Assembly (NCBI GenBank): GCA_004764695.1
Contig: SMSO01000036.1
Coordinates: 868,001 to 932,000, forward strand
DNA: 64,000 nt
DNA from: Schizochytrium sp. TIO01
Lineage: Eukaryota; Protista; Bigyra: Labyrinthulomycetes
Direction: 5' to 3'
Numbering within the stretch: the first letter of the stretch is position 1; each line of letters begins with the position of its first letter. This document shows positions 16,361 to 59,121 of the stretch, one piece after another. The notes beneath the pieces are model-generated. The model made no database searches. It was not told the DNA's origin and was given only the letters and a program-made list of their open reading frames with translations. The position numbers were made by a program, and so were the translations under genes.

Positions 16361-17099
16361 AACTCATACACATTGCACTTGAAGTCGAGCACCTTAAAAC
16401 ATGTCCTTTCCTGAACCTTTTGCACAGCATTAAAACTGACTTAGAGTCCATAAAAATGAATTTTGAATTGTTTATTGGTGCTCGTCTCATCTTCTTCATC
16501 ATCCAAAAGAAGAGACTTGTATACCATGCATGTCTAATTTTGACTAACCTAGAAACTAAAAAAAGAGGATACACTGGTAGGTGGGTACCAGTAGCAGGTA
16601 GATACTAGGTAGCACCAGCATTCTCACTTTTGACTGTTTTGGCTTCAAGTTGAAACTTTATACGCTAAGGTTTTGACTTATTACCTCTGACAAGTGATAG
16701 TGGTGAGGGCTATAAAAGATGCCCAGATATCTAGACAGTGTACTTAAAAAATGCATAGGGGATTAATTATTTATACTATCATCTGACAAACTCAAAAGAA
16801 ATGTAGGCCTATCTAGGTCCTAGGTCCTAGGTCCTAAGTCCTAAGTTCTAGGAGATAAGTTGGGCTTGTTGCCTAAACTCCAGGTTGGCATTAAAGTTTA
16901 ACATAAATAAATACTAAGTGCTGCCGTTGCAAGAAGCAATCAACTTCAGAGCAGTAAATAGAGATGCGAACAGAGCTGCAAAGTTCAAGCCCGATGAAGT
17001 GATGAGGCATCAATCGGGGCGGAGGTGGGCAAATGAGAGCGATAGATGATCATGGGTTAGGGGTCTCTGGGTAGGCGGTATGGTAGTGCTCTGTGTGTT

Positions 17100-17560
17100 T
17101 GCCTTGACATAGCTGCTTTGTCGGATGGAAAAGACACCTTGGTAAACTTTCCGCTGATCAACACTGCTGAAGTATTGAAGTCACTTCTTGCTCAAGGTAT
17201 TACTTTCTTAAAGTCGGATGCAGAGTTAATTTCTGCTCCTTGTATATCAACAAATCGAGGCTGTACTGCAGAAAGAGGAGTGTTGCGAGTCATTATGATG
17301 TTTGTGCGCCTCCCTCTGTTTAATGCAGGCCTTCTGAGTTGCTGCCGGTGATAAATCTTATATTTTGCTGCACTTATGCACGTAGGACAATCTCTTCAGA
17401 AGAAATCGAAGCTTCTGTTGAATTGTTTGGAGTAAACATTCATTTGCTTCCAAAACATCATTTAGATCCTAGTATGTTCGCATGAGCAAAGTCTTCGAGT
17501 TAACCTAAATCATGCTGACGTTGAAAACATGAGATGGATTAAATGCACTCAATGGCTTCT
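17100..17560 (-). mobile_element. Possible gypsy-like integrase remnant
   Basis: HANI...RDCPTC (HHCC-like, similar to the HCNI...DC at ~3500) followed by VDIQGAE; heavily decayed. Confidence 0.3.
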
Positions 17561-17903
17561 GTAGTATTGTTTGAAAGTACGTTTAATCACATCCAAGTTC
17601 TTATACCTGAAATACAATGATTCACACAGGCCTTTTCTAGCTTTTCATCTTGAAAATAGAATAGTTGCTCAGAGGTACACCTTATGACTCTGTATCACGT
17701 CATACATTTTGTCGAAAAAATCTAGTTATAAGGGGATGGTTGGTGCAAGCTTTTAAAGAAGGACAGTTTAAGAAAGTCATACATAAGCGCGGTACTGGGC
17801 TCCAATTTTCTTCATCATAGTATGATAGATGATTTGCAGGGTGTCCAACTCAGATACACCACGGGAAATAGGAGATCAAAGCTCTAATATCCTTTCGTAG
17901 GAG

Positions 17904-17973
17904 TCCCGGTTAGCTCAGCGGTAGAGCGTTTGACTCTTAATCAAATGGTCGAGTTCGTTCCCCTTTTTGAGAA
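17904..17973 (+). pseudogene. Degenerate tRNA-Lys(CUU), first unit of the array
   Basis: 5' half identical to the other copies; T-arm (GAGTTCGTTCCCCT) and 3' acceptor strand (TTTTGAGA) are damaged. Confidence 0.85.
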
Positions 17974-18109
17974 CATCTTTTTAAAGATGTTATGCAATAT
18001 ATTTTTTCCATACCAGAAGAAAGTGGATAGTACTACATAAATTCCGCGTTTCCAGGCTGGACTATTATGGGAAATAGGAGCATCGAAGCTCTATCGTCCT
18101 TCTTAGGAA

Positions 18110-18181
18110 TCCCGGTTAGCTCAGCGGTAGAGCGTTTGACTCTTAATCAAATGGTCGAGGGTTCGATCCCCTCATTGGGAA
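18110..18181 (+). tRNA. tRNA-Lys(CUU)
   Basis: Cloverleaf: TCCCGGT/ATTGGGA acceptor, GCTC/GAGC D-stem, TTTGA-CTCTTAA-TCAAA anticodon arm, GAGGG-TTCGATC-CCCTC T-arm. Confidence 0.96.
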
Positions 18182-18313
18182 ATCTCTTTTTTGGCTTTAT
18201 CTATATTTTTTTTGTTAAAGAAAAAAATGGATAGTAGTACAAAAGTTCCACTTCAGTTGTACATCGATCATGGGAAATAGGAACGTCGAAGCTCCGTTGT
18301 CCTTTCATAGGAA

Positions 18314-18385
18314 TCCCGGTTAGCTCAGCGGTAGAGCGTTTGACTCTTAATCAAATGGTCGAGGGTTCGATCCCCTCATTGGGAA
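18314..18385 (+). tRNA. tRNA-Lys(CUU)
   Basis: Identical 72-nt cloverleaf followed by oligo-T. Confidence 0.96.
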
Positions 18386-18522
18386 ATCTCCTTTTTGGCT
18401 TTGCTTCTATTTTTTTAATTGAAGAAAAGGAAAATAGATAGTAGTATATAAATTCCGGCTGACCTTGAAAGAAATGTCATGGGAATTAGGAGCATCGAAG
18501 CTCTATCGTCCTTTCATAGGAA

Positions 18523-18594
18523 TCCCGGTTAGCTCAGCGGTAGAGCGTTTGACTCTTAATCAAATGGTCGAGGGTTCGATCCCCTCATTGGGAA
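18523..18594 (+). tRNA. tRNA-Lys(CUU)
   Basis: Identical 72-nt cloverleaf followed by oligo-T. Confidence 0.96.
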
Positions 18595-18731
18595 ATCTCC
18601 TTTTTGGCTTTGCTTATATGTTTTTTATTGAAGAAAAGGAAAAGGGATAGTAGTATATAAATTCCAGCCGACCTTTTGGACAACATCATGGGAAATAGGA
18701 GCATCAAAGCTCTGTTGTCCTTTCTTAGGAA

Positions 18732-18803
18732 TCCCGGTTAGCTCAGCGGTAGAGCGTTTGACTCTTAATCAAATGGTCGAGGGTTCGATCCCCTCATTGG
18801 GAA
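18732..18803 (+). tRNA. tRNA-Lys(CUU)
   Basis: Identical 72-nt cloverleaf followed by oligo-T. Confidence 0.96.
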
Positions 18804-18935
18804 ATCTCTTTTTTGGCTTTATCTATATTTTTTTTGTTAAAGAAAAAAATGGATAGTAGTACAAAAGTTCCACTTCAGTTGTACATCGATCATGGGAAAT
18901 AGGAACGTCGAAGCTCCGTTGTCCTTTCATAGGAA

Positions 18936-19007
18936 TCCCGGTTAGCTCAGCGGTAGAGCGTTTGACTCTTAATCAAATGGTCGAGGGTTCGATCCCCTCA
19001 TTGGGAA
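18936..19007 (+). tRNA. tRNA-Lys(CUU)
   Basis: Identical 72-nt cloverleaf followed by oligo-T. Confidence 0.96.
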
Positions 19008-19144
19008 ATCTCCTTTTTGGCTTTGCTTCTATTTTTTTAATTGAAGAAAAGGAAAATAGATAGTAGTATATAAATTCCGGCTGACCTTGAAAGAAATGTC
19101 ATGGGAATTAGGAGCATCGAAGCTCTATCGTCCTTTCATAGGAA

Positions 19145-19216
19145 TCCCGGTTAGCTCAGCGGTAGAGCGTTTGACTCTTAATCAAATGGTCGAGGGTTCG
19201 ATCCCCTCATTGGGAA
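19145..19216 (+). tRNA. tRNA-Lys(CUU)
   Basis: Identical 72-nt cloverleaf followed by oligo-T. Confidence 0.96.
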
Positions 19217-19352
19217 ATCTCCTTTTTGGCTTTGCTTATATGTTTTTTATTGAAGAAAAGGAAAATGGATAGTAGTATATAAATTCCAGCTGACCTTGTG
19301 ACAACATCATGGGAAATAGGAGCATCAAAGCTCTATCGTCCTTTCTTAGGTA

Positions 19353-19424
19353 TCCCGGTTAGCTCAGCGGTAGAGCGTTTGACTCTTAATCAAATGGTCG
19401 AGGGTTCGATCCCCTCATTGGGAA
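19353..19424 (+). tRNA. tRNA-Lys(CUU)
   Basis: Identical 72-nt cloverleaf followed by oligo-T. Confidence 0.96.
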
Positions 19425-19560
19425 ATCTCTTTTTTTCTTGGCTTTGTCTATACTTTTTTATTGAAAAAATGAATCGATAGTACTACAAAATTTCCACCGC
19501 AATTTTGCAGCCAGTTATGGGAAATAGGAGCATCGAAGCTCTGTTGTCCTTTCATAGGAA

Positions 19561-19632
19561 TCCCGGTTAGCTCAGCGGTAGAGCGTTTGACTCTTAATCA
19601 AATGGTCGAGGGTTCGATCCCCTCATTGGGAA
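19561..19632 (+). tRNA. tRNA-Lys(CUU)
   Basis: Identical 72-nt cloverleaf followed by oligo-T. Confidence 0.96.
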
Positions 19633-19769
19633 GTTTCCTTTTTGGCTTTGTCTATATTTTTTTAAATTGAAGAAAAAGAAAATAGATGGTAGTACAAAAA
19701 TCCCTCCACAGTCTCAGCTTACATCATGGGAAATAGGAGCATCGAAGCTCTGTTGTCCTTTCTTAGGAA

Positions 19770-19841
19770 TCCCGGTTAGCTCAGCGGTAGAGCGTTTGAC
19801 TCTTAATCAAATGGTCGAGGGTTCGATCCCCTCATTGGGAA
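19770..19841 (+). tRNA. tRNA-Lys(CUU)
   Basis: Identical 72-nt cloverleaf followed by oligo-T. Confidence 0.96.
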
Positions 19842-19978
19842 ATCTCCTTTTTGGCTTTGCTTATATTTTTTTAATTAAAGAAAAGAAAATTGGATAGTAG
19901 TATATAAATTCCAGATGAATCTCGCAGAGACATCATGGGAAACAGGAGCGTCGAAGCTCTGTCGTCCTTTCATAGGAA

Positions 19979-20050
19979 TCCCGGTTAGCTCAGCGGTAGA
20001 GCGTTTGACTCTTAATCAAATGGTCGAGGGTTCGATCCCCTCATTGGGAA
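19979..20050 (+). tRNA. tRNA-Lys(CUU)
   Basis: Identical 72-nt cloverleaf followed by oligo-T. Confidence 0.96.
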
Positions 20051-20187
20051 ATCTTCTTTTTGGCTTTGCTTATATTTTTTTAATTAAAGAAAAGAAAATT
20101 GGATAGTAGTATATAAATTCCAGATGAATTTCGGGAAAACATCATGGGAAATAGGAGCATCAAAGCTCTGTTGTCCTTTCTTAGGAA

Positions 20188-20259
20188 TCCCGGTTAGCTC
20201 AGCGGTAGAGCGTTTGACTCTTAATCAAATGGTCGAGGGTTCGATCCCCTCATTGGGAA
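20188..20259 (+). tRNA. tRNA-Lys(CUU)
   Basis: Identical 72-nt cloverleaf followed by oligo-T. Confidence 0.96.
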
Positions 20260-20396
20260 GTTTCCTTTTTGGCTTTGTCTATATTTTTTTAAATTGAAGA
20301 AAAAGAAAATAGATGGTAGTACAAAAATCCCTCCACAGTCTCAGCTTACATCATGGGAAATAGGAGCATCGAAGCTCTGTTGTCCTTTCTTAGGAA

Positions 20397-20468
20397 TCCC
20401 GGTTAGCTCAGCGGTAGAGCGTTTGACTCTTAATCAAATGGTCGAGGGTTCGATCCCCTCATTGGGAA
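20397..20468 (+). tRNA. tRNA-Lys(CUU)
   Basis: Identical 72-nt cloverleaf followed by oligo-T. Confidence 0.96.
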
Positions 20469-20605
20469 ATCTCCTTTTTGGCTTTGCTTATATTTTTTCA
20501 ATTAAAGAAAAGAAAATTGGATAGTAGTATATAAATTCCAGATGAATTTCGAGAAAACGTCATGGGAAATTGGAGCATCGAAGCTCTGTTGTCCTTTCTT
20601 AGGAA

Positions 20606-20677
20606 TCCCGGTTAGCTCAGCGGTAGAGCGTTTGACTCTTAATCAAATGGTCGAGGGTTCGATCCCCTCATTGGGAA
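20606..20677 (+). tRNA. tRNA-Lys(CUU)
   Basis: Identical 72-nt cloverleaf followed by oligo-T. Confidence 0.96.
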
Positions 20678-21159
20678 GTTTCCTTTTTGGCTTTGTTAAT
20701 TTTCAATATTGAATTAAATTATAGTGCTTTCAAGTCTTGCGTTGATAACTTTATTCCAAGGCTCAAGAAATGATATGATTACAGCAAAGAAGAGTATACT
20801 AGGGCTTTTGCTGGATGTCAAGAGATATTCCAGATGCAAACCGGGTTTGGTTCATGCTCCCGTTTATAACTTCATCCAGGTTAACTTTATGGCAGTGCAT
20901 TCGATTTGCAAAAGGTAAAATTGTATCGAATTGTTTCTCAAATGCATACTCTTTTGAAGTGAGAAGTGATGATCTAGCTTCCGATTTCTGAGTAGTACTC
21001 AACAGAAAACAAAAGAACATAGTAAACCTATCTACAAAACAAAGAAAGCATTTGCAAAATTGAGCAGAAAAGAGTTATTTTTAGTTATTAGTAAATAAGA
21101 AGTCAAGCCAAACATCACACGAGCATTCAGAAAAAGAAAAAAAATCATTCCATAAGCCT

Positions 21160-22590: not shown

Positions 22591-24490
22591 CTACTTGGCA
22601 AATGCACGGGCTTCCCCCTTTTTGTAGGGTCTGCTCGAGAGTATCTCTTCCGAGTTCACTGGATGGAGTCTTGGCTCTCGAGAATCTAAGCAGCGAGCCA
22701 ACGTACTTAACAATCAATCTATCCCAGAACTTCACTGAGGCTTCAGCTTTAGCTTCCCCCAAAAGGCTCTAAGCACACAGCGCTGCGTTCTGAGCTCGTC
22801 GCTTTGCACACTATTGTGTCTCGAATGTGCTCCACGCGGCGCTCTGAGACAGTAAATATGATAGGAGTTTGCGAAGCTTCAGGAGAGAGTAACAGGGTAT
22901 TGAAAACCTTTCTTCTATAGTTAGCTAGGAAGACCATTGCTAACTAGTTGCTATATAATAATCACCTAGGTACTTATGCTATTGTATTAGTGTTATATAT
23001 AAGTGTGTGCTTCTAACTGCCATAGAGAGAGCAATCATGCTAGAACTACCAAGTGCCTAGGTGTTGTTTACCCATGTGGCTCTCAACACTCGTACGCTCT
23101 CAAAAAGCACCAATGGAGTCTTTGCAGAAATTAATAGATAAAGCGCCAAAGAATAAGCATATAATAAAGACCTTAAGAGGCAGTCGTATGCGGCATGAGT
23201 TGCTAAATTACGAGCAGCCGAAATACCTTGCAGAGAGAAACTTAGAGAGAGTTTTCATATGTCGCATTAGTTGAACTTTGATTTTTTCATGGTTCATTCT
23301 TTTGAAAGTATGTAGCCTAAACGGACGTCAAGCTCCAACCCTGATGCGTCAGAATCGGACAGGTATTAAATTTGTTACGTAATCACTACCTGGTGCTAAT
23401 CTAATTTGTGGTTTGGATCGGCTACTCTGGCAAAGCAATGAACGAGCTAAAGGGTGTACTCTCCATTATAAATAAGACGGAAATGCTATAAGTCACAAAA
23501 TGCATCCACGAATAAAATATGTATGTTGAACAAGAGAAGAGGAAAGAGAACGAGGAGGATCATGATAGAAACAGCCGGAATAATTGCGTTTGGGGGGAAT
23601 ATTCACTAACAATATAAATTTGCAAAACCTCAAGACCAAAGCTTAATTTGCGCTATTTATTTGATTCTGTCCATCTTTAGCATCTCTGATGCACTAATTG
23701 AATGCAAACTTCAATACTAGCAGCACAGCCTGGAAGTCCCAATAGTGCTTCTTTAACTTTCTATTTATCGATATTTACCCAGTAATCAAAATGCGAGGTG
23801 TTGGCTGATGCTGGTTTGCTGTTCTGTTATGAACTTTATGCACTAAGCTAATAGACATCAGTCAGGAGACGTGGCAATTATGCTTTCTTCTCTGCGTCAA
23901 AGATGAACGAAAAGAAAAGAAACGATTTTTCATTTTTCATTTTTTCATTTGTATGTCTATAACAAATTAAATTTTTATTAAAAAACAAAACAATATAAAA
24001 ACGGACCTAGATTTAAAAATTGGGTCGAAAAAATAGAATTAAAAGACAGTAACAATGGGGAACTTTGCATATAACGCATTGAGACGATGGTTTTAAAAGA
24101 AAAAATATAGGAATAGGATAGCAGATGGTTTTTGGCCATGCGAGTTTGGGAAAAGGACAAGGAAACTTAAGTAAAGAGTCATCGGCTTAATTTACCAATA
24201 AAGATGTAGAAATTGTCCTACAATAGAATCCTAAGTAAGTTCTTTTTAGAGCTTCCTTTGGATAATAACATTGTAAACCACGGTGGTTGGAGAGTACTAT
24301 TATTGGGATTGTTAGGTAGGTCGGTAGGTAAGTAGCAATAGTAGTGCTGATGGTAATTGGACGACTATGAATGCTTGAAGAACAACAAAGTTCATGAAGT
24401 AGAGTTGCTGGAGAAACAAATCCTGCTTCCTTTGTCAAAATCGTCACACCGAAGTTGGGATGCATAAGGGCCTTCGGTCTGACCATTTCT

Positions 24491-27349
24491 ATGTATCTTG
24501 CGATGGCAGAAATGCTCATCTCAACTTCTCTTGTGAGCGCCCGTTTGCTGGCTCCTCGAGGATGTAGCACGACTGCGTCTCGCGTCCTGCAAAAGGTTTG
24601 GCTCGGAAGCCAGCCTTTTGCTCGCTGTGCCAGCACCAAGGCTGATGGATTGAGCGGTTTAAAATCCAAACAACATGAGTTGCGGAATCTACGCAAAGAG
24701 CTGCAAAGCATTCGTCAGAGAGTTGAAAAGTTAAAGGTCCAGCCACAGTCTCAAATGACGGCTAGCAAGGATCGAGAGGGTAAGGATTCAAAGGGTGAGG
24801 CTCCACTCGCTCACGCTGCACAATCGAATGCGCGCTCTAAGGCTAGTGATGCGCCGGGTGCAAGCAGCCGGTTAGGAGACAAAAGGGAGACGAAGACATC
24901 ATCTGCTTCAAGTCCTGCGAAAACAGGGAAACCTGATGACCGAACACCAAATTTAGCGGGAAAATCAAAGCCGTCATCTGCAGAGTCTGCATCTTCTATT
25001 CAGCACGAAGTGATCATGACTCCTGTTCGGGACCTTTTCCCCCTGGAAAAGAATGCTAGTCAACTCTTATCTATCATAAACTGTGATTCTAAGGATTTTC
25101 TGATCTGGAAAATCACAACTGTGGAAGAAGCTCAAGAGTTTGTCCGTCTGGTCCAGAAGCTCCCACCTAGTGTTGTACTTGGCTGTGATACCGAGGCTTC
25201 AATCGATCTAGAACTTGGGGTGGTTAACAATGGTTATATCACCTGTGTATCAGTTGCATTTCCTACACTCAAAGACTATGATCTTGTGAGGGGGTTGCCG
25301 AACGAGCAAAGGAAAGTATTAGAAAAACAACTTCCTCAGCGCCGATTATGCGCTTGGATTGATGTTCTTGGTGACCGCGCACATTTGCTGGACATCGTTA
25401 AACCAGTATTTGAATCCGGAAATGACAATCCAAGAAAAGTATGGCAAAACTACACTTTTGATTTTCATATGCTTGCAAACCATAATATCAAGCACAGGGG
25501 TCTGGCAGGCGATACAATGCACATGGGCCGCTTGGTGCACAATGGTCGTATCAGAAGTTTTAGTCTTTCGGAACTCTCTTCTGCTTGTTTAGACCGTCCC
25601 GAGTTAGCCAAGATTTCGATGAAAAATATTTTTGGTGAACGCGAGAACTCTAAGGACGCTGGTAAGCAACAAGGGAAATCTATTGCCAAATCAGATATTA
25701 TTCAGGTTGGTCCACTTCGTGAAGCTTGGATCGAATACAGCTGTCTAGACTCTGTTGCATGTCTTGAGCTTTACTTTCTTTTCCAGAGTCAACTTCGGAA
25801 CATGAATTTTGTCGAAAAGGACACTGGTCTACACCGAAACCTTTTAGAAGTCTACGAAGCCGGAATCTTGCCATTTGCACAAGTACTTGCGGATATAGAG
25901 CGAGCTGGGTTTCAGGTAGACCTTAAACACCTTTCAGCAATCGAAAAGGCAGCGAGTGAGGATCTCGAAGCCGCCGATAAAAGCTTTAGAGGCTGGCTTC
26001 GTACATCAGGTGCTTTGAAAGACCCTGATGATGCGGATCTTTTCAATACAAGTTCTTCAGCGCAGCGCTCTGCCTTGTTGTTCAGTTGGGACCCAAAGGA
26101 AAAAAAAGTGATCAATCTAAAAGATCCTTCGAGCTGCATTTACATGAAGGATACAACTTCGAATAAACAAGTTGCTATTCGGGGACTTGGTCTTGAAATT
26201 ACAGATGTTACCGCCACTAAGGCTCCGGCTACGGGCTCTGCGGTGCAAAGTAAACTCGTTGGCAAGCCATTCGATGACCCTCCAAAGTGGGGAACTGCCT
26301 ATGAACCTCTAGAGAGTCAAGAAGCAGGTCGTGGGGAAGCTGCTTGCAAAGGTTTGGGTCATCTCATCGAGTCCGCTGCTATCCAGAAACTTCTAACCAC
26401 TTTCATTGCGCCCCTCAAGAAACGAGGTGAGGAAAGCGCGGAGCATCGCATTCATACTTCTCTTAAGTTCAACACGGAAACTGGACGACTGAGTGCTAGC
26501 AATCCAAATTTGCAGAATCAACCAGCTCTCGAGAAGGATCGTTACGGAATTCGGAAGGCATTCATCTCCCGTCCTGGAAATAACTTAATTGTTGCAGATT
26601 ATGGACAGCTGGAACTCCGTGTGTTGGCTCATCTAGCCAACTGCGTACCGATGATCAAAGCTTTCGAAGCTGGTGGAGATTTTCACAGTCGTACAGCCTT
26701 AAGCATGTTTGACTATATCGAGAAAGACAAGGAAGTCATTCTTGAATGGGACAAAGCAGCAAATGGGGGCAAGCCCCCGCCGTACCCTCTTATTAAAGAT
26801 AAATATGCATCGGAACGTCGCCAAGCAAAAGTTCTTAATTTCTCGATCGCATACGGTAAGACAGCGTTTGGTCTATCAAAGGACTTTGGGGTATCTCTTG
26901 ATGACGCCAAAGACATTGTGGCGCGTTGGTATAGTGCCCGACCTGAAGTTGATCAATGGCAAAAAGATACAATTAATTTTTGTAGGAAATTCTCTTACGT
27001 AGAAACAATATGGGGTCGACGTCGTTTCTTTCCGAAAATCAATTCAAGCAATCCTAGAGATCGAAGTGCTAGTGAACGGGGTTCGATTAATACACCAATT
27101 CAGGGCAGTGCTGCAGATATTGTGATGAGTGCTATGATCAAGCTTCATATGCATGAACGGTTTCGTGAAATCGGTTGGCAAATGGTTTTACAAGTACATG
27201 ATGAAATTATTGCAGAGGGCCCGGAAGAATCAACCGACGAAGCCATGGAGATTGTCCGAACTGTGATGGAAAACCCAATGGATTACAAAATGCGGGTTGA
27301 CATGATTGTTGATGCCAATGTTGCGAAAACTTGGTATGAGGCTAAATAA
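24491..27349 (+). CDS. Organellar family-A DNA polymerase (POP, Pol I-like) with 3'-5' exonuclease and N-terminal transit peptide
   Basis: Exonuclease motifs CDTE, WQNYTFD and YSCLD; polymerase motifs TGRLSASNPNLQNQP, ADYGQLELRVLAH, RRQAKVLNFSIAYG, NTPIQGSAADI and QVHDE; GGDFHSRTA is typical of POPs; Arg/Ser-rich leader. First ATG is at 24491 (the ORF track starts at TTG 24455). Confidence 0.93.
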   Translation: MYLAMAEMLISTSLVSARLLAPRGCSTTASRVLQKVWLGSQPFARCASTKADGLSGLKSKQHELRNLRKELQSIRQRVEKLKVQPQSQMTASKDREGKDSKGEAPLAHAAQSNARSKASDAPGASSRLGDKRETKTSSASSPAKTGKPDDRTPNLAGKSKPSSAESASSIQHEVIMTPVRDLFPLEKNASQLLSIINCDSKDFLIWKITTVEEAQEFVRLVQKLPPSVVLGCDTEASIDLELGVVNNGYITCVSVAFPTLKDYDLVRGLPNEQRKVLEKQLPQRRLCAWIDVLGDRAHLLDIVKPVFESGNDNPRKVWQNYTFDFHMLANHNIKHRGLAGDTMHMGRLVHNGRIRSFSLSELSSACLDRPELAKISMKNIFGERENSKDAGKQQGKSIAKSDIIQVGPLREAWIEYSCLDSVACLELYFLFQSQLRNMNFVEKDTGLHRNLLEVYEAGILPFAQVLADIERAGFQVDLKHLSAIEKAASEDLEAADKSFRGWLRTSGALKDPDDADLFNTSSSAQRSALLFSWDPKEKKVINLKDPSSCIYMKDTTSNKQVAIRGLGLEITDVTATKAPATGSAVQSKLVGKPFDDPPKWGTAYEPLESQEAGRGEAACKGLGHLIESAAIQKLLTTFIAPLKKRGEESAEHRIHTSLKFNTETGRLSASNPNLQNQPALEKDRYGIRKAFISRPGNNLIVADYGQLELRVLAHLANCVPMIKAFEAGGDFHSRTALSMFDYIEKDKEVILEWDKAANGGKPPPYPLIKDKYASERRQAKVLNFSIAYGKTAFGLSKDFGVSLDDAKDIVARWYSARPEVDQWQKDTINFCRKFSYVETIWGRRRFFPKINSSNPRDRSASERGSINTPIQGSAADIVMSAMIKLHMHERFREIGWQMVLQVHDEIIAEGPEESTDEAMEIVRTVMENPMDYKMRVDMIVDANVAKTWYEAK

Positions 27350-37829: not shown

Positions 37830-39338
37830 ATGATGGCAACCCGGACCCGTACGGGTCAACCTAGCGGCACTGGCACAACCATGTCACGACCCTCAAACAT
37901 GAATCAGGATTCATGCACGAGGTTTCCCACTAATTCCAAATATTCTCTGCTAGGCTTTGCGTTTCTCTTTGCGATTTTCTGGGTGCATACTTTCTCACTT
38001 CCTGGAGGCGTGCGTCATGATCAAGAGGAAAGCGGATTTCCCTTGATGACACTTATAGATAGTGAGAATGAAGAAGATCTGAACGACATCATTGACTTTA
38101 ATGAGGGAGATGAGAGAGATGATTCGAATAGTGACTTTGATAATGATACAGATCTTAACCCGAGTAATCTGGCCAGATTTGATGAGAATGGTTTCAAGAT
38201 TATTTATCGCCCACGAAAAAAGTCGGCTCCAGGTTCCGAGCGAGACACAACCTGGCAAGCGATTTCCAAAGACTTCATCTACCCCGAAAATAATACTGCT
38301 GCTCTCACAAGTGGTATGCCGCATCCTTACTCGCCTGACCAGTGTTTTGATCTTTGTGGTGAGACGATTTGCTCTGACGAAATGGAACGTCGCACAGACT
38401 TTACAAAGCGTGCAACGCCAACCTATCGTTCGCCTCGATGCCGTGAAAAGCTTAACATTCCCAAATATTTCATTATCGGCTACTCCCAATCAGGCACAAC
38501 ATTCTTTTCTGACGTCATTCGTAAGCATGACAATGTTCGTGCTGCCTGTCACAAAGAGATTCACTATTTCGATGTAACACTCTACCTGCGTGCTCAGTAC
38601 CATGTGAATCGGAAAGATCGTATGCGCAGCATTACTTCTTACTTTTATTGTTTTCGCCGTGTGGCTAATGATACTAACAAGATCATTGGCGATCACACTG
38701 TGAAAGCGATTTACACCGATGTTTGGTACCCATCATGGGTACGGGCTGTCAATCGCCACATGAAACTAATCGTTATCCTGCGAGATCCTACTAAGCGAAC
38801 CTACTCCCGGTTTTCTCAGCTTGGCGGAGGGCGAGGTTGCTTTCGAATCATTGAAAAGAGCCGCTGCAAAGTTATGCTCCCATATGTGGAGACTATGCTG
38901 AAGTATATCCGACTAAAGTGTCCTGAAGTGCAACCAGGGGGCGACCCAAGCGCGGTATATTCCTGCGGGTATAGTTTAGGCTCAGAAATAATTGACAATG
39001 ACACAATTATATCAGGTCTGTATGAGCACCACCTTCGTCATTGGTTGAATTTTTTTCCTCCTGAGCAATTCCTTCTCCTGGCTTCCGATGAGCTCTTTAA
39101 GAATACAGAAAAGACTATGGCTCGTGCAACAGACTTTCTGGGTCTGAATCGTTATCCACCTGGCAAGATAGCCCGCGTGACACAACAAATTGGCCATCAC
39201 ACACATACTCGAAACAAGGCCCCGCCAGATGAGCAAGCGATGCAACTGCTTCAGGAATTTTATGAACCATACAACATTAAACTCCGCGAGCTTCTTCAAA
39301 ATACATTTGACGTTGCTGAAGCCGATCTCCCTTTTTAA
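37830..39338 (+). CDS. Type II membrane sulfotransferase (HS3ST/CHST15-like), paralog 1
   Basis: N-terminal TM helix and acidic stem; PKYFIIGYSQSGTT (5'-PSB), KEIHYFD, KLIVILRDPTKRTYS (3'-PB), GLYEHHLRHWLNFFPPEQFL, LQEFYEPYN. Confidence 0.88.
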   Translation: MMATRTRTGQPSGTGTTMSRPSNMNQDSCTRFPTNSKYSLLGFAFLFAIFWVHTFSLPGGVRHDQEESGFPLMTLIDSENEEDLNDIIDFNEGDERDDSNSDFDNDTDLNPSNLARFDENGFKIIYRPRKKSAPGSERDTTWQAISKDFIYPENNTAALTSGMPHPYSPDQCFDLCGETICSDEMERRTDFTKRATPTYRSPRCREKLNIPKYFIIGYSQSGTTFFSDVIRKHDNVRAACHKEIHYFDVTLYLRAQYHVNRKDRMRSITSYFYCFRRVANDTNKIIGDHTVKAIYTDVWYPSWVRAVNRHMKLIVILRDPTKRTYSRFSQLGGGRGCFRIIEKSRCKVMLPYVETMLKYIRLKCPEVQPGGDPSAVYSCGYSLGSEIIDNDTIISGLYEHHLRHWLNFFPPEQFLLLASDELFKNTEKTMARATDFLGLNRYPPGKIARVTQQIGHHTHTRNKAPPDEQAMQLLQEFYEPYNIKLRELLQNTFDVAEADLPF

Positions 39339-42344: not shown

Positions 42345-43838
42345 ATGAATCTTAATCTAAGTGATCGTAGGTCACCACAGAGAAGGCAAAGCTGCCCAAA
42401 GTTTTGCTACACGCTCGGCCTAGATGCTCGACCCAACGGGCTACCTTGCTCTAAGGGAGTACTCGTGTTTGCCCTTTCAACATTTGTGCTTACAAGTATC
42501 TTACTTACATTGTCGCGAGGCCCATCGAGTCTATCACTCCCAGATAGCTTGTATGGCGCTGAGCTTGGTGCCACAACTGAAGGCACCCATAACCTAGCTA
42601 TTACACAAGATAATCGTGTCGAGGGTAATGCTTCTGCTTTGTCTAACGATTATGACTCGGTATCACCCAGCTTTGAAACATCGTCACGTCCTTCCTGGGC
42701 AAACCCAGAAGAGAATCGTGGTACCTGGACTCAACTTAGTTTAAACTTTACTTACCCTGAGCATACTTCTGTTTGGAACACCAGTCTCATGCCCCATCCC
42801 AAAGGTCCTAATATGTGCTTTTCACTATGCAACCTTACAGAAGAGATATGTGCAAATGACCTGCCCAAATATATCGACCGTACTAGCCATCGCAATCCTC
42901 AAATTACTACACCAAAGTGCCCTAAACCCTACCCTCTTCCGTACTACGCAACAATCGGTTATTCCCAAGCTGGTTCTACATTCTTTACGGATGTTTTAAC
43001 GCTCCATGAAAACGTGGACCGAGCTTGTCGCAAAGAAATTCACTATTTCGACCATACTTTGTTTCACAGAGCTTATACCATACGAAAACATACTCCCCGT
43101 TTCAAAATTGCAGGCTACTCCGCATGCCTCCAGGGTCGTGGGCATAAACTTGCTAGTGGAAACGCAATTGTGGGTGATAACACAATCAAACAAATCTATG
43201 TGGATGCATGGCAGCCTGTGTGGTTAAAGGCTATAAACCCCGAAGTCAAACTTATGATTATCCTTCGCAATCCTGTAAAAAGGAGCTACTCTCGCTACAG
43301 CATGCGAGGAGGTGGAGCAGTATGCCATAATTTCCTAGACCCATCTGCTTGTGCGAGAAATTTTGATGCTTACGTTCCTGGGATAATTAGGTACATCAGA
43401 ACCAAATGTCCTTACCTTCTTCCCAGGGGAGACCCAGGCGAGGCTTATGCATGCGCAAATGCAGCTGACGAAAATGCTCGACGAGAAGATGTTGACACAG
43501 TTGTTTCATCAATGTATTATCACCACATTCGCCACTGGCTCAACTTTTTCCCCCCTGAGCAGTTCCTAGTTTTACAATCAGATCACCTCTTCGCCGATCC
43601 ATTTCGCGAAGTTAATCGCGCTCTCCATTTCCTCGGGCTTAACCCGTTTGAAAGAAGCGCTTTTGATACTTTGATGAAACAAAGTGTAACACGTTCTAAC
43701 AGTCACATTGGTCATGCGAAACAGCCGAAAGAAGAGACTTTGGCGCTCCTCGAGGCGTTTTTTCTACCTTTCATGGATCCTCTTTACGAAATGCTACATG
43801 ATGTCTTCGGTATTGATAATGTCTCGCTCAAACACTAA
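42345..43838 (+). CDS. Type II membrane sulfotransferase (HS3ST/CHST15-like), paralog 2
   Basis: TM helix; IGYSQAGST, KEIHYFD, LRNPVKRSYS, HWLNFFPPEQFL; colinear with paralog 1. Confidence 0.88.
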   Translation: MNLNLSDRRSPQRRQSCPKFCYTLGLDARPNGLPCSKGVLVFALSTFVLTSILLTLSRGPSSLSLPDSLYGAELGATTEGTHNLAITQDNRVEGNASALSNDYDSVSPSFETSSRPSWANPEENRGTWTQLSLNFTYPEHTSVWNTSLMPHPKGPNMCFSLCNLTEEICANDLPKYIDRTSHRNPQITTPKCPKPYPLPYYATIGYSQAGSTFFTDVLTLHENVDRACRKEIHYFDHTLFHRAYTIRKHTPRFKIAGYSACLQGRGHKLASGNAIVGDNTIKQIYVDAWQPVWLKAINPEVKLMIILRNPVKRSYSRYSMRGGGAVCHNFLDPSACARNFDAYVPGIIRYIRTKCPYLLPRGDPGEAYACANAADENARREDVDTVVSSMYYHHIRHWLNFFPPEQFLVLQSDHLFADPFREVNRALHFLGLNPFERSAFDTLMKQSVTRSNSHIGHAKQPKEETLALLEAFFLPFMDPLYEMLHDVFGIDNVSLKH

Positions 43839-51198: not shown

Positions 51199-54100
51199 AT
51201 GCCTTGGCGTTATCTAAATAAAGTGAAGTATCATTTAAGAATAATCGAACTCATAAAATCAACCTGCTATATAATATTGTATAGTTTTTTAATACATTTA
51301 GAAAGCACCTCCCAGTCAATGCTTTATCCATTCAAGGACAGCTGTCCACAAAGCTCCTCGAGCTCGCCTACTCTATGTAATGCGCACATGCGAACCATTG
51401 AGAGACTTGCCTCAGAGTTATACAATAACGCAACCATCTTAAACAGTGATATACACAACATAAGGCCAGACTCTTCGGGTACGTGTAGACCTCCGAGAGC
51501 TGTGTACACGTCAGGGACTTTGACAACAGAGTCCATACTCGAAACTGAATTAAAGATCTACATGAGTTCGCTATACTCGATCGAGACTACGCTCGAAGCG
51601 ACGGAGGCTGACCTGAGCATGAACAAACGCGGACAACGACGACCTAGAAGATTCAAATCTCACAAAAAAAGAGTTCATCCTGAGCCGCAGCTCATGCCAA
51701 ACATGAAGTCTGCCCTCGGAAAGTGCCTTACCCCTGCATCAGCAGCATTAAAAACATACTCAGGTCCCAAGGGGCTTGAGCATATAGAAAGAGTCGAGAG
51801 TAGCACATCAATCAACTCAGCAGTACCTGGTGAAAGTTTGGACCAGAATCTGGGAGATGTGGCTCTCCGTGGAAACAACAGAACATCGATATCTTCCATG
51901 ACAAAACCGTCCCTCATTGTAAAAATACAGTCTCCTCAATTTACCGAAGCTCCAGAAAGTAATTTTGAGGATTCAAAACAAATACTTTTAAGACCATGTA
52001 ATCCAGACTCTACACGAACAAAGCATCGCCGCAATAAAAGTACGCCAAAATTTACTTCACGAGAAGACCTTAAGAAAATAAAAGAAGCTCATGCTGCTCT
52101 TGAGGCATCGGCTAGAGCAAAAGTAGCCGTGTTGCGTGCTGAACAACGCAGAGTTGAGAAAATGAGAAAAGAAAAGCGAGCAGATAAAGAGCTTGAACGG
52201 AAAGCACAGGAAAATAGGAGATTTAAAGCTACAATGTACAATGACATGGCAGAGAGATCTCCTAATGTTCATGGTGATGAAGGGACACAATCAAAACCTC
52301 CATCAACAAATGCACATAAAAAGCGTAGTGTGAAGCCACTTATTCACCAACAGATGGATAGAGAGTGGTGCAAGGTGCAACAGCCTGGCTGGCGCAGAAC
52401 CTGGGAGATTCTCGAGCAGGGTTCTCTAAGCTCTGCTGAAATAAGGCAATCACCCAGATCTGCAAGTTCATTCTATGCACAAGAAGCCACTTATAGTAAA
52501 CAACTAAACTTTGAGCAGCTCTCCTCGGCTTCGTCGGATGAGCACTCGCTTCTGCCTGATTCCAAAATTCAACCTGTCAGTGCAGATCTTCATTCTTCAT
52601 CCCCTACGAATAGATCGAAGCCTCACTGTTCACATTCTCATGGACTGGGTCCTGAGCATACCCTCATTACGACATCAAATCACCTTACCAATAGTAAGTC
52701 TTTGACAATACCAGAAAACAAATGCAACAGCTTGCCTGCAACAGATCGGATGGTTTATTATCCGAATCGACACGAACGTGCATCAAGCTTGGAAGGAAAC
52801 ATTGCATACGAGGAGCCATCTTTTAATATGCATGATGTTTCTCTTCGTTCAAAATTGCATCATTACGCTCATTGCATGCCCCAGACATCTTGTACTTCTG
52901 AAAAAACTCCCGTATGCGCACCAAATAATCCTGGCGAGGAACAGCCAGTCTTCACTGCTGAAAGTTTTGCCCCAAAGAGAGGCGATATAAATGCAGCTGA
53001 ATTCGATATTCCTCATCTTGGCCAAAGTGGAACAGATACTCAGACAAATGTCGAAGCCGGTCTTCATGTGAGTCTTGATCATTCTATCCAAAGAGTTAAA
53101 AGCGCAAATGTGATCAATACTAATCTAGAAGTTGAGAACAACTTTGCTAATCATGTTCAAACCAGTAGTGCAGAAAAATTGGATGACAGGGACGGTATTA
53201 ACAGTGCATTTCATCGCACTGATCAAAATGACATTAACTCTGGCTGTAGTCAAGTCTTTGTAAAAGATCTAAACATATGTGTGGGGATAGCTACCTACAA
53301 GCAGAACACAGCTGATCTCATCAGTAAAAGTCATGATACTAGAGGTAACGATGCAATCTCTAGCTTTGACACAAATAAGGTTGGTGATGATAATTGCATT
53401 GATATAGGAGATACTGAGCCCTTCGAAAACCTCAGAAACATTGCAGACGTCCAAGTAGCTGAGAACTCTGAATCCTATGAAGATTGCAATTATTGTAGTA
53501 AACATCGTGGCAATTGTAAAGTCATTGAAGATAGCGACAATAGTGAAGATGTCGAAAATTTAAAAGGTACTATGGAAGTCGAAAAGGGCGAGCATGGCAA
53601 AGGTGGCAACAACGACAACAGCACCAACGCTGGCATCAACGACAACAACGGCGACGCTGGCAGCAACGACAACAACGGCGACGCTGGCAGCAACGACAAC
53701 AACGGCGACGCTGGCAGCAACGACAACAACGGCGACGCTGGCAGCAACGACAACAACGGCAACACTGGCAGCAACGACAACAACAGCGACGCTGGCAGCA
53801 ACGACAACAACAGCGACGCTGGCAGCAACGACAACAACGGCGACGCTGGCAGCAACGACAACAACGGAGACGCTGGCAGCAACGACAACAACGGCAACGA
53901 TGACAATAACGGCAACGATAACAACGACGGTAATGATGGCAACGATGGGGAAGATGGCGATGATGACTATGACCACGATGGTGATGATGACCAAGATAGC
54001 GAGGATGGTGAAGGTGATAAAGATGGTGAGAAAATTGTTCAGGATATCAAAGACCGTAAAAGTGAAGCCCAAGAAAATTATAAACGTGATCAAAATTTCC

Positions 54101-56703: not shown

Positions 56704-58197
56704 TTAGGAATGGCGTGGCTCCGGTAAACTTGATTTGAGCATTGACCTAAGTAGGCCAAAAAACACGGAAGGGCGCAATCTTGGAGTCACAGCTTCGTAT
56801 TTCCATCCAATATGGAAATTGCATCTCCTACATGCAATGCAAGTCCACGCATAGCCGGGGAAATACGTGTGCTCTGTAGTAGTTTCACCAAGCTCGAAGT
56901 AGCCTTCAACTTCATTAATAGTAAGAAGTTGGTGGGTATAACCATGTGCATTCATAAAAGAGCCAGTAGCACCATCTGTAGACATAGAAATGACGTTCGA
57001 AGTTGTAGCAAGCTGCGCATTACAAAAGCCACAGTAGAGTATTTCTTCAACCCCTTCAATATGCTCCAGAATTTTTAATAAACGCTTTTCAGTCGAATTG
57101 ATTTCTAATAGAGAACGTACTGTGCGCATGTCCAAAGGGAGGTTTCTTGCAAGCCAGTAAGAGAATCTCTCGGTTTCAAATCTTGTAGTAGGGAGTAAAA
57201 GTCCTTCTGACGTCTCACTGAGCCCGAATGGTTTTAGGAGACGCGCTCCTAAGTCAACAATGCGCGAGCAAAGTGCTATAGGACTATAAATATTGTGTAC
57301 AAACGAAGGAATGGAAGTAACTCCTAGAGCTACTTGACCAAAGTTTCCATTATTCTCATCAGGAAGGACCCGAATGCGTGCAATAGCATGAAATTGACCA
57401 CTTGGGATTTCAAGCTGGATGAGCTTGAACCGAGATACCCCGTAAATAGTAACATCTGCCCAATCCCTTTCCTGATCCATCGTGTCGCTTCCATTCGGGA
57501 TGCGAGGCGGAGATGGAGAAACCACAGACTGAAGCTGCGCCAGGGTGCCAACGCGGCCAACGAGGCTACTATCTGGGCCAGGACGTGGTCCACAATCAAG
57601 ATGTCCAACAAATCTTGGAAACCTAATCGAATCCCCAAGTGTGACTAGGGATTGATCGTCCAGACCCACAATCATTTCGCTGGCAAATTCAGAAGAAATT
57701 CGTATCGGCATTGTCTCTGATGGCATCAAAAGTATGTTTCTAAAGAGGAGGACACAGGCAACAACTTCCTCCCCGGGTACAGGTAGCCCATCATCAGAAT
57801 GGTGCCAGAAGAGACTGTCTTTGTGACTTTTCCTTGTCTCTGATCTACTGTGCACCTCATCGAGGTCATTTAGAGAATCATCATCACTATCACAATTTGC
57901 GCTCCCATGTACTCTGTCCTCTTCGTGTTGCGTGAATTGGGCCTCCCGTACATGGCTCTCCTGGCCTCCTTCAACATCTACACCAGCAATGTCTGTCAAG
58001 TTGAGAGCCTCTCTTCTTGTTTCTTCTAAATTCACCAGGGACTGTCGCAGACCTAGATAGGTATGTTGCGCAGGTAAAGAGGCGTCAAAGAGTTGAATAT
58101 TCTCTTCTTCTTTCTCTTCCGCATGTTGTTGTTGTTGGTGGGGGTCTAGCAGCTCCACCTGTTGTTGCTGCTGCTCTTGCTCTAGATAAGGATCCAT
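56704..58197 (-). CDS. CRBN: Cereblon (Lon N-terminal domain plus CULT/thalidomide-binding domain)
   Basis: FDASLPAQHTYLG, FSYWLARNLPLD, CGFC, FMNAHGYTHQLLT, EHTYFPGYAWTCIACRRCNFHIGWKY, FFGL. First ATG at 58197. Confidence 0.95.
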   Translation of the reverse strand: MDPYLEQEQQQQQVELLDPHQQQQHAEEKEEENIQLFDASLPAQHTYLGLRQSLVNLEETRREALNLTDIAGVDVEGGQESHVREAQFTQHEEDRVHGSANCDSDDDSLNDLDEVHSRSETRKSHKDSLFWHHSDDGLPVPGEEVVACVLLFRNILLMPSETMPIRISSEFASEMIVGLDDQSLVTLGDSIRFPRFVGHLDCGPRPGPDSSLVGRVGTLAQLQSVVSPSPPRIPNGSDTMDQERDWADVTIYGVSRFKLIQLEIPSGQFHAIARIRVLPDENNGNFGQVALGVTSIPSFVHNIYSPIALCSRIVDLGARLLKPFGLSETSEGLLLPTTRFETERFSYWLARNLPLDMRTVRSLLEINSTEKRLLKILEHIEGVEEILYCGFCNAQLATTSNVISMSTDGATGSFMNAHGYTHQLLTINEVEGYFELGETTTEHTYFPGYAWTCIACRRCNFHIGWKYEAVTPRLRPSVFFGLLRSMLKSSLPEPRHS

Positions 58198-59121
58198 TAG
58201 TTCTAGGTTAAGCTTCACAGCAGTGGCGCCAGACTATTCCAGGCCACAACTTGTACGAAGTGAAGATTCTTTAAAAAAAATGAAGTGAAGGGAGGGTTCG
58301 TAGCTAAAGTTGGGGAGGAACTGGCACAGAATAAGTGGAGCTGCTGGATGCGGCAAGTAAGGGTTAACCGCTTTACAAGAGGCAGTAAGCTTGAGAGGAA
58401 ACAGTAAATTGGCTCTCGCGTGTGCACCATGCGTCACGAGTTAGCGAACCAGTGTTGGAATGAAAGAGATGTATTTCTGTTTTGTGTGTGGGTCTTGGGA
58501 TAGATAGACAATGATATTCACTTAGCAACGCAAAAGGGCTATCTAGTTACCACTAGTAGGTAGTACCATACCTTTTAATGTCTATAACTAGTACTAGCAA
58601 GCAGTATCAATGTCTAGTATTAAGCTACTCCTTGTCTTGGGTTAAAATTTTAAAATTAAACTCACAGCAATCACCGGCGAAAGTACTTCTACTTGGGCAA
58701 AGGCTCTACACACATACATTTAAAAAAAAACACGCCTGAATTGGATAATCCTTGGTAAAGAATAATGCAGTTTTTGCGCGCTTTTGCTACACAAATATGA
58801 GCAGTTGATTGCCTTGTTTCCACTTGAGTTTCATTATCTTGCATCATTGATTCTATTTTTCTAATACTGATGATACTCTCTAGAGTATTCTATAGTCATA
58901 AGAGGGAAATAGTAGTAGATGGTAGATAGTCAGTAGTAAATTTCAGAGTTCTGCAATTTAAAGGTGGTGTCACATGCAGGTAGACATGGATGTAGACGTC
59001 TGCAGAAGTGCTCCTGGTTGAGGCAAAGCTGAAGCATCGCGAGGATACTAGCTTGTAGGGAAGACAGAAAGTGTATCACGCATCTAGCAAAGAGCGACGT
59101 ATAAATTGAACAGCAAACGAC

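Follow-up and report, generated by a model that had tools for sequence, protein, structure and literature searches.

In a 64,000-nucleotide (nt) stretch of the genome of Schizochytrium sp. TIO01 (the window, G000:C35:868001-932000 of a searched genome of 64 Mb in 37 contigs), genes for a lysine transfer RNA with the anticodon CUU, tRNA-Lys(CUU), form a tandem array in which each gene is preceded by conserved DNA. A sequence-only reading of this array had interpreted the upstream DNA as a 77-nt, tRNA-like RNA that lacks a D arm and is transcribed together with tRNA-Lys. We find that the conserved DNA is not a second, tRNA-like gene. Comparison of the array with the other tRNA-Lys(CUU) genes of the genome suggests that each gene is a single RNA polymerase III (Pol III) unit, in which a TATA box, a free spacer and a start site near -42 would be followed by a 42-nt structured leader and the tRNA; we put the probability of this arrangement at roughly 0.6. 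The leader contains a small hairpin that is, to judge from the changes in its stem, under selection as an RNA structure, which would imply that it is transcribed.

The array runs head-to-tail over positions 17850-20703 on the plus strand, as do all array features given below, with a period of 209 base pairs (bp). ARAGORN, Rfam and Tandem Repeats Finder (TRF) agree on 14 tRNA-Lys(CUU) genes, comprising 13 identical copies and a decayed first copy. The Rfam tRNA model (RF00005) scores each of the 13 intact copies at 68.4 bits and the decayed copy (unit K, 17904-17974) at 33.8 bits; unit K has a deletion in the T arm, has no TATA box and carries a leader hairpin that is short of one base. The 13 intact units contain 10 distinct spacers, labelled A-J, and three exact duplicates, reflecting higher-order duplication. 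Identical spacers precede the tRNAs at 18314 and 18936, at 18523 and 19145, and at 19770 and 20397, and within 18182-20677 the higher-order pattern reads as blocks B-C-D / B-C-E and G-H-I / G-J. The tRNA itself has normal A and B boxes, and its T arm matches the B box at 9 of 10 positions. In unit I, which we use as the representative, the tRNA occupies 20188-20259, starts with a U1-A72 pair and is followed 7 nt further on by a T5 run (20266-20270) that resembles a Pol III terminator; a T5-T8 run lies within 10 nt 3′ of every intact copy. A U1 start is found in several tRNA families of this genome (Lys, Asn and Gln).

Directly upstream of the tRNA, each intact unit carries a conserved block (20146-20187 in unit I), which we take as the putative 5′ leader of the tRNA-Lys precursor. 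The same block occupies 18069-18109 (41 nt), 18272-18313, 18481-18522, 18690-18731, 18894-18935, 19103-19144, 19311-19352, 19519-19560, 19728-19769, 19937-19978, 20355-20396 and 20564-20605 in the other units. Its length is confined to 41-43 nt across 24 intact copies, the 43-nt form occurring at locus L039, and among the array units the mean pairwise difference per column within these proximal 42 nt is 0.06-0.12. Conservation sets in abruptly at GGGA (20146-20149, at -42), which forms the 5′ end of the block and is invariant in all 18 distinct sequences. The four bases ahead of GGGA vary, the base just before it being a pyrimidine in 17 of the 18 distinct copies. At the other end of the block, AGGAA (20183-20187, -5 to -1) is nearly invariant, and the longest T run inside the block is T3, with no run of four or more in any copy.

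The extent of the conserved unit is set by genes outside the array. A BLAST search of the genome found the same tRNA-Lys(CUU) at 12 further loci, 11 of them identical and one with a single mismatch. Six lie in one recently duplicated segment, three (L033, L035 and L036) are older copies of a cluster of tRNA-Lys, tRNA-Leu and tRNA-Gln genes, and three (L017, L039 and L040) are solitary. Array and dispersed genes have in common only the proximal 41-43 nt, plus a TATA-like box further upstream; the distal half of the 77-nt block is missing at all 12 dispersed genes. We regard this within-genome comparison as decisive. The proximal block is present at all tRNA-Lys(CUU) genes; the tRNA-Lys(UUU) genes of the genome are without the 42-nt block. 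A covariance model built from the leader alone (R1, from alignment A3) and run on the genome recovered the same set: its 25 best matches, at 44-74 bits, are exactly 25 tRNA-Lys(CUU) genes, with L039 at 23.5 bits. Metagenome scans with the 5′ part of the tRNA as the query gave no match.

The hairpin at 20154-20169 (GGAGC-AUCAAA-GCUCU) consists of a 5-bp stem and a 6-nt loop of the form WUCRAW, which is present at all tRNA-Lys(CUU) loci compared. Its stem reads GGAGC/GCUCU in the array, GUAGC/GCUAC in the L016 group, AGAGC/GCUCU at L033, GGGGC/GCUCU at L036, GGUGA/UCACC at L040 and GAUGC/GCAUC at L039, and at the last two, solitary loci it is fully Watson-Crick though unlike the array at most stem positions. 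Double changes have preserved the pairing in three independent lineages, and changes of G·U to G-C or A-U have done so in others; selection at the RNA level is indicated because the stem sequence changes while pairing is kept. In a MAFFT alignment (A2), two-sided changes occur at three stem pairs and the observed measures were reached by 2-4 of 500 shuffles; that alignment misaligns L039, which there counts against the structure, and placing L039 by hand yields more compensated pairs.

This hairpin had been likened to a T arm with a B-box-like loop. The small hairpin is real, and in the array its loop takes only the forms ATCGAA, ATCAAA and GTCGAA, as described, but it is neither a T arm nor a B box. 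It resembles these, and the B-box-only TFIIIC sites (extra TFIIIC (ETC) sites of yeast and the external B box of Dictyostelium), in its UCRA loop core and 5-bp stem. It differs in having a loop of 6 nt and not 7, in a closing pair that is C-G or A-U and not G53-C61, in its position upstream of the A box and in its match to the B-box consensus GGTTCGANTCC, which extends to 5-6 of 10 positions in most copies and to 8 of 10 in L040. The loop AUCGAA is also the exact complement of the tRNA T loop UUCGAU at positions 54-59 (20159-20164 against 20240-20245), and variants keep 4-6 of the 6 pairs. This complementarity is ambiguous, because the core UCGA is palindromic and pairing cannot be distinguished from T-loop likeness; nor can the pairing be tested by covariation, because the tRNA is invariant.

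What lies further upstream has the features of a promoter. Every locus has a TATA-like box 33-36 bp ahead of GGGA, and the DNA between the two bears no relation from one lineage to another. A strict TATA falls inside this 4-nt window in 8 of 13 lineages, with a chance expectation of ~0.02 per window (binomial P about 1e-10), the distance being measured to GGGA as the presumed start and not to a mapped 5′ end. A spacing of ~30-36 bp is usual between TATA box and start for Pol III, as in U6 genes and in the tRNA genes of Schizosaccharomyces pombe and plants. Because the distance from TATA to GGGA equals this spacing, we infer that transcription starts at or next to GGGA. In unit I, the TATA box is TATATAAA (20110-20117), 36 bp upstream of GGGA. 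The array has two promoter classes, with TATATAAA in units C, D, E, H, I and J and the weaker TACAAAA or ACATAAA in units A, B, F and G. The stretch GGATAGTAG (20101-20109 in unit I), previously taken to be the 5′ strand of an acceptor stem, holds the motif GATAGTA and adjoins the TATA box. Of the 13 intact units, 11 have GATAGTA in this position, and unit G and its duplicate (19684 and 20311) have GATGGTA instead. GATAGTA or TAGTAT also occurs upstream of tRNA-Gln, tRNA-Val, tRNA-Asn and tRNA-Leu genes, always on the strand of the gene, and the frequency of these motifs in the window outside the array is that of the background.

Between the promoter and the conserved block lies a stretch of 22-24 nt, between TTCC and GGGA (20122-20145 in unit I), that has been called a hypervariable cassette. 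It is the most variable part of the 209-bp unit, with a mean pairwise difference per column of 0.55-0.77 against 0.15-0.35 in the rest of the spacer, and the sequence at the corresponding position is unrelated among the dispersed loci. We read the cassette as what appears to be an unconstrained spacer between TATA box and start, of which only the length would matter. Between units, divergence of the cassettes (18046-20565) is 2-4 times that of the remaining spacer, the AT-rich part past the terminator included; at the six dispersed copies of recent duplication, the corresponding stretch varies no more than what surrounds it. Reading the cassette as an unconstrained spacer fits this pattern only provided that constraint or homogenization acts on the remainder of the array spacer, and a local mutation hot spot may be the cause of the divergence instead.

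Taken as a 77-nt RNA, the upstream DNA does not bear out the proposed fold. Spacer comparison confirmed that a conserved block precedes the tRNA in each array unit and that only T3 separates the two, as against T5-T8 after each tRNA. The example unit can also be drawn as the three-way junction that had been proposed, and in units H and J this is partly the minimum-free-energy (MFE) structure. Against dinucleotide shuffles, however, the 77-nt blocks of the 10 distinct units fold with z scores of only 0.0 to -1.9, the value for the example itself (20101-20177) being -1.35. The acceptor-like stem GGATAGT/GTTGTCC pairs completely in just 4 of the 10 distinct units, the other six containing A·C, C·C and other mismatches; in these 10 units no change of T to C in the 3′ strand is matched by a compensating change, and the 5′ strand is missing at the dispersed tRNA-Lys(CUU) loci. 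The long hairpin closed by TTCC/GGAA, which had been assigned to the position of an anticodon arm, is not conserved: it outperforms shuffled inner sequence in unit H alone (z -2.4), and the other nine units give z scores of +0.9 to -1.1. Neither the acceptor-like stem nor the long hairpin shows covariation.

ARAGORN in its mitochondrial modes (-mt and -mtmam; mitochondrial mode admits arm-less tRNAs) and at lowered thresholds (-ps) made no tRNA-like call in the plus strand of the array spacers. Rfam at E<=10 over 17700-20800 returned only the 14 tRNA-Lys genes, with no match in the spacers, and at gathering scores it returned only tRNA in the whole window. The upstream partner in a dimeric tRNA gene has internal A and B boxes of its own; the upstream block here contains no A-box-like sequence and matches the B box at 5-6 of 10 positions. 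Its 5′ half, which is not conserved beyond the array, includes the TATA box. The proposal of an undescribed tRNA-like RNA in a dicistronic unit thus finds no support from tRNA models, covariation, folding energy or conservation outside the array. The fallback offered with it, a structured 5′ leader, survives in shorter form, as the proximal 42 nt with one covarying hairpin and not as the full 77-nt block. Two sets of minor candidates were set aside as well. Weak Rfam rows for snoU109, NPPA-AS1_3 and STnc410 (14-20 bits) are noise, and a minus-strand C/D-box small nucleolar RNA, suggested by eye from ATGATG in the reverse complement, has no D box and its motif is missing in several units.

On the basis of these comparisons, we propose the following model for the tRNA-Lys(CUU) genes. 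An external TATA-type promoter, its TATA box about 75-78 bp before the mature 5′ end and preceded in the array by GATAGTA, would be followed by 22-26 bp free of sequence constraint, the hypervariable cassette. With a start at, or immediately beside, the invariant GGGA at -42, the transcript would consist of a 5′ leader of 42 nt, the 72-nt tRNA and a short trailer that ends in T5-T8. Folding on its own, the leader would form the 5-bp hairpin with its WUCRAW loop, possibly enclosed by an outer helix between GGGA and an invariant UCCU (20174-20177, near -14), which is able to pair with GGGA and does so in MFE folds. The last leader bases, AGGAA, are predicted to pair with the U/C-rich 3′ trailer; in the MFE structure of leader, tRNA and trailer together, the leader forms a separate domain and AGGA is paired to the trailer, the whole precursor having a z score of just -0.6. 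RNase P would then remove the leader in one piece. Four parts of the model are inferred: where transcription starts, which polymerase carries it out, how the precursor is processed and what the hairpin may do. The hairpin may act as a handle for a protein or RNase P, may keep the leader off the body of the tRNA, or may form part of a released small RNA.

Several observations weigh against this model. The leader folds only modestly better than its shuffles (z 0 to -2.7), and the hairpin stem contains a mismatch in unit B, in L034 and L038 and in L017. The outer GGGA/UCCU helix and AGGAA show no variation and could equally be DNA motifs. In the implied geometry, the start precedes the A box by 50 bp and TFIIIB precedes it by about 86 bp, distances longer than in well-studied type-2 genes. 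Finally, three RNA-like runs, available as assembled contigs and not registered as RNA, provided no contigs inside the array and are uninformative on the ends of the precursor.

The same runs touch the margin of the array. Contigs of run X1 over 16922-18133 represent a spliced plus-strand transcript with a GT..AG intron (17472-17564), along with an unspliced form, and the spliced transcript runs on past the decayed tRNA copy and enters the first array unit or units. In run X4, one contig extends over a tRNA and 21 nt of its trailer, crossing the T run. These transcripts look like RNA polymerase II (Pol II) read-through into the array. The strain of run X1 differs from the assembly in unit A, the leader of which is 41 nt long in the assembly: an extra T at 18099-18100 restores 42 nt, and A is replaced by G at 18086, in the hairpin loop, and at 18093.

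The arrangement is general, in that tRNA-Val and tRNA-Thr genes show the same layout as tRNA-Lys(CUU). In tRNA-Val genes of the GCAGGTGT type, a TATA box precedes a conserved (A)CCAGCAG, located at about -28, by some 28-35 bp (counted by eye), and the hairpin after CAGCAG differs in every copy, with stems such as GAGGG/TCCTC, TGAGCT/AGCTCA and AATGA/TCATT. In tRNA-Thr genes, TGTAGGAT at about -43 is followed by a hairpin with the stem GTGCCC/GGGCAC or CAGGCTA/TAGCCTG. The tRNA-Val genes found (L048 and L050-L062) carry the anticodon GAC, in large arrays with a 165-bp period, and also CAC. In eukaryotes this valine box is normally served by AAC, which is read as IAC.

The main rival to a transcribed leader is a DNA-level promoter element. 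The 42-nt block would then be bound by TFIIIB, by a SNAPc-like factor or as an extra TFIIIC site, and transcription would start at about -5 to -10, possibly at the A of TAGGAA, to give a short leader. TFIIIB normally covers roughly -45 to -10 in model organisms. The block is fixed at 42 bp, its GGGA, TCCT and AGGAA vary neither in sequence nor in their distance from the A box, and a start near -8 could be directed by AAATAG, a possible weak TATA at about -38. A protein-binding motif, however, leaves the pairing-preserving changes in the stem unexplained, as it does the existence of a second, better TATA box whose distance to GGGA is fixed at 33-36 bp. The match to a B box extends to only 5-6 of 10 positions, and the tRNA-Val and tRNA-Thr genes have hairpins of unrelated sequence at the corresponding place. 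We consider this rival possible, at about one chance in five in our judgement.

Conservation of the block could alternatively be a by-product of young gene copies, or of gene conversion spilling over from the tRNA into its 5′ flank, in which case the block would have no function. The tRNA copies are identical or one base apart, which suggests concerted evolution, and six of the dispersed copies derive from one recently duplicated segment. Yet the conservation is one-sided, covering 42 nt on the 5′ side and nothing past the T run on the 3′ side, and it stops sharply where the sequence just upstream is saturated with changes. Spill-over also leaves the compensatory stem changes unaccounted for, as well as the retention of the whole architecture at L039 and L040 with largely different sequence, and we judge it improbable.

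Transcription by Pol II from the TATA box, with the tRNA cut from a capped precursor, seems more improbable still. TATATAAA is a canonical TATA box, the spliced plus-strand transcript of run X1 reads into the first array units, and a precedent is provided by tRNA-Sec, which is reported to be a Pol II product in Trypanosoma brucei (PMC2943599). The T5-T8 run at most 10 nt past each tRNA 3′ end, together with a leader without T4 or longer runs, is instead a Pol III signature, and the tRNA has normal A and B boxes. Least credible is the 77-nt tRNA-like RNA released by RNase P and RNase Z, which the absence of T4 or longer runs between block and tRNA in most units would allow but which comparison has largely refuted: besides the missing 5′ half at the dispersed genes, the uncompensated mismatches and the unremarkable folding set out above, the supposed RNA contains T4 in units D and F, and the canonical TATA box would fall inside it and leave it promoterless.

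Seven weaker matches to the leader model R1, at 23-29 bits, lie away from any tRNA-Lys(CUU) copy found by BLAST, at C18:37837-37882(+), C5:25934-25979(-), C34:2948995-2949040(-), C34:2821074-2821119(+), C35:2664662-2664707(+), C36:1171027-1171071(-) and C34:53365-53409(-). Each may be the leader of another gene, a relic or a chance match. The genes for tRNA-Lys(CUU), tRNA-Leu(AAG) and tRNA-Gln(CUG) form a cluster of ~0.8 kb at at least seven loci, and at up to nine of the dispersed tRNA-Lys loci (L014/L033, L016, L031, L032 and L034-L038), several of which lie 25-125 kb from contig ends; examples are G000:C33:26042, C4:38975, C8:48492 and C13:124847. Each cluster member has a conserved upstream block of its own, GTTTTNATATTGTRCTYA for tRNA-Leu and RGTAGTATGGYTT for tRNA-Gln. 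Within the window, neighbouring open reading frames (ORFs) lie at 24455-27349, 37830-39338, 42345-43838, 56704-58218 and 53604-53899. The ORF at 24455-27349 is 100% identical to an MMETSP transcript labelled TAXON_ID 87120. Among the proteins encoded by the neighbouring ORFs are a family-A DNA polymerase with a 3′-5′ exonuclease domain, two paralogous sulfotransferase-domain proteins and a cereblon-like protein that combines LON-substrate-binding and Yippee domains. A neighbouring NEMP gene has an orthologue in Hondaea fermentalgiana, and a 1694-amino-acid ORF in the window contains an in-frame tandem repeat of 27 nt in 11 copies.

Comparison with known systems shows where the proposed unit would depart from them. 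Like eukaryotic pre-tRNA 5′ leaders, the block lies directly upstream of +1 on the tRNA strand, has no internal Pol III terminator and ends in bases that can pair with a U-rich trailer. The leaders of yeast, plant and animal pre-tRNAs are about 5-15 nt long and are not known to be conserved in sequence. The tRNA-Lys block, in contrast, has 42 nt, a fixed length, invariant motifs and a covarying hairpin. With TATA-dependent Pol III promoters (tRNA genes of S. pombe and plants, and U6-type genes) it shares a TATA box about 30-36 bp upstream of the presumed start, with a further upstream motif, GATAGTA, abutting the TATA box in the array. TATA-dependent tRNA genes, however, start a few bases before the tRNA, whereas here the start would lie 42 nt before it and about 50 bp from the A box. 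Dimeric tRNA genes, such as tRNA-Ser/tRNA-Met-i of S. pombe and tRNA-Arg/tRNA-Asp of Saccharomyces cerevisiae, likewise have an upstream structured segment, a junction free of T runs and a downstream tRNA, with release by RNase P as would apply here; their upstream partner is a full tRNA with A and B boxes, in contrast to the single 5-bp hairpin without tRNA features in the tRNA-Lys unit. A literature search on thraustochytrid and Aurantiochytrium tRNA genes, tRNA promoters and Pol III found nothing relevant.

A single model, in which each tRNA-Lys(CUU) gene is one Pol III unit with a TATA box, a free spacer and a structured leader, would account for both the supposed tRNA-like element and the hypervariable cassettes, and it removes the claimed new class of RNA. 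A bolder and in our view doubtful extension is that thraustochytrid nuclear tRNA genes as a class have external TATA promoters and isoacceptor-specific structured leaders of 30-45 nt, and that the tRNA-Lys leader is an active module, either holding the precursor in a kissing-loop form until RNase P cuts or persisting as a stable 42-nt small RNA with a 5′ triphosphate. If the start site is confirmed, these would be pre-tRNA leaders three to four times the textbook length, fixed in length, specific to each isoacceptor family, equipped with a selected hairpin and under the control of a TATA box remote from the internal promoter. Such genes would widen the known geometry of Pol III promoters and raise the question what part a structured leader plays in RNase P processing or tRNA folding. 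They would also offer Pol III promoter and leader parts usable for guide-RNA expression in an organism that is an industrial producer of docosahexaenoic acid (DHA).

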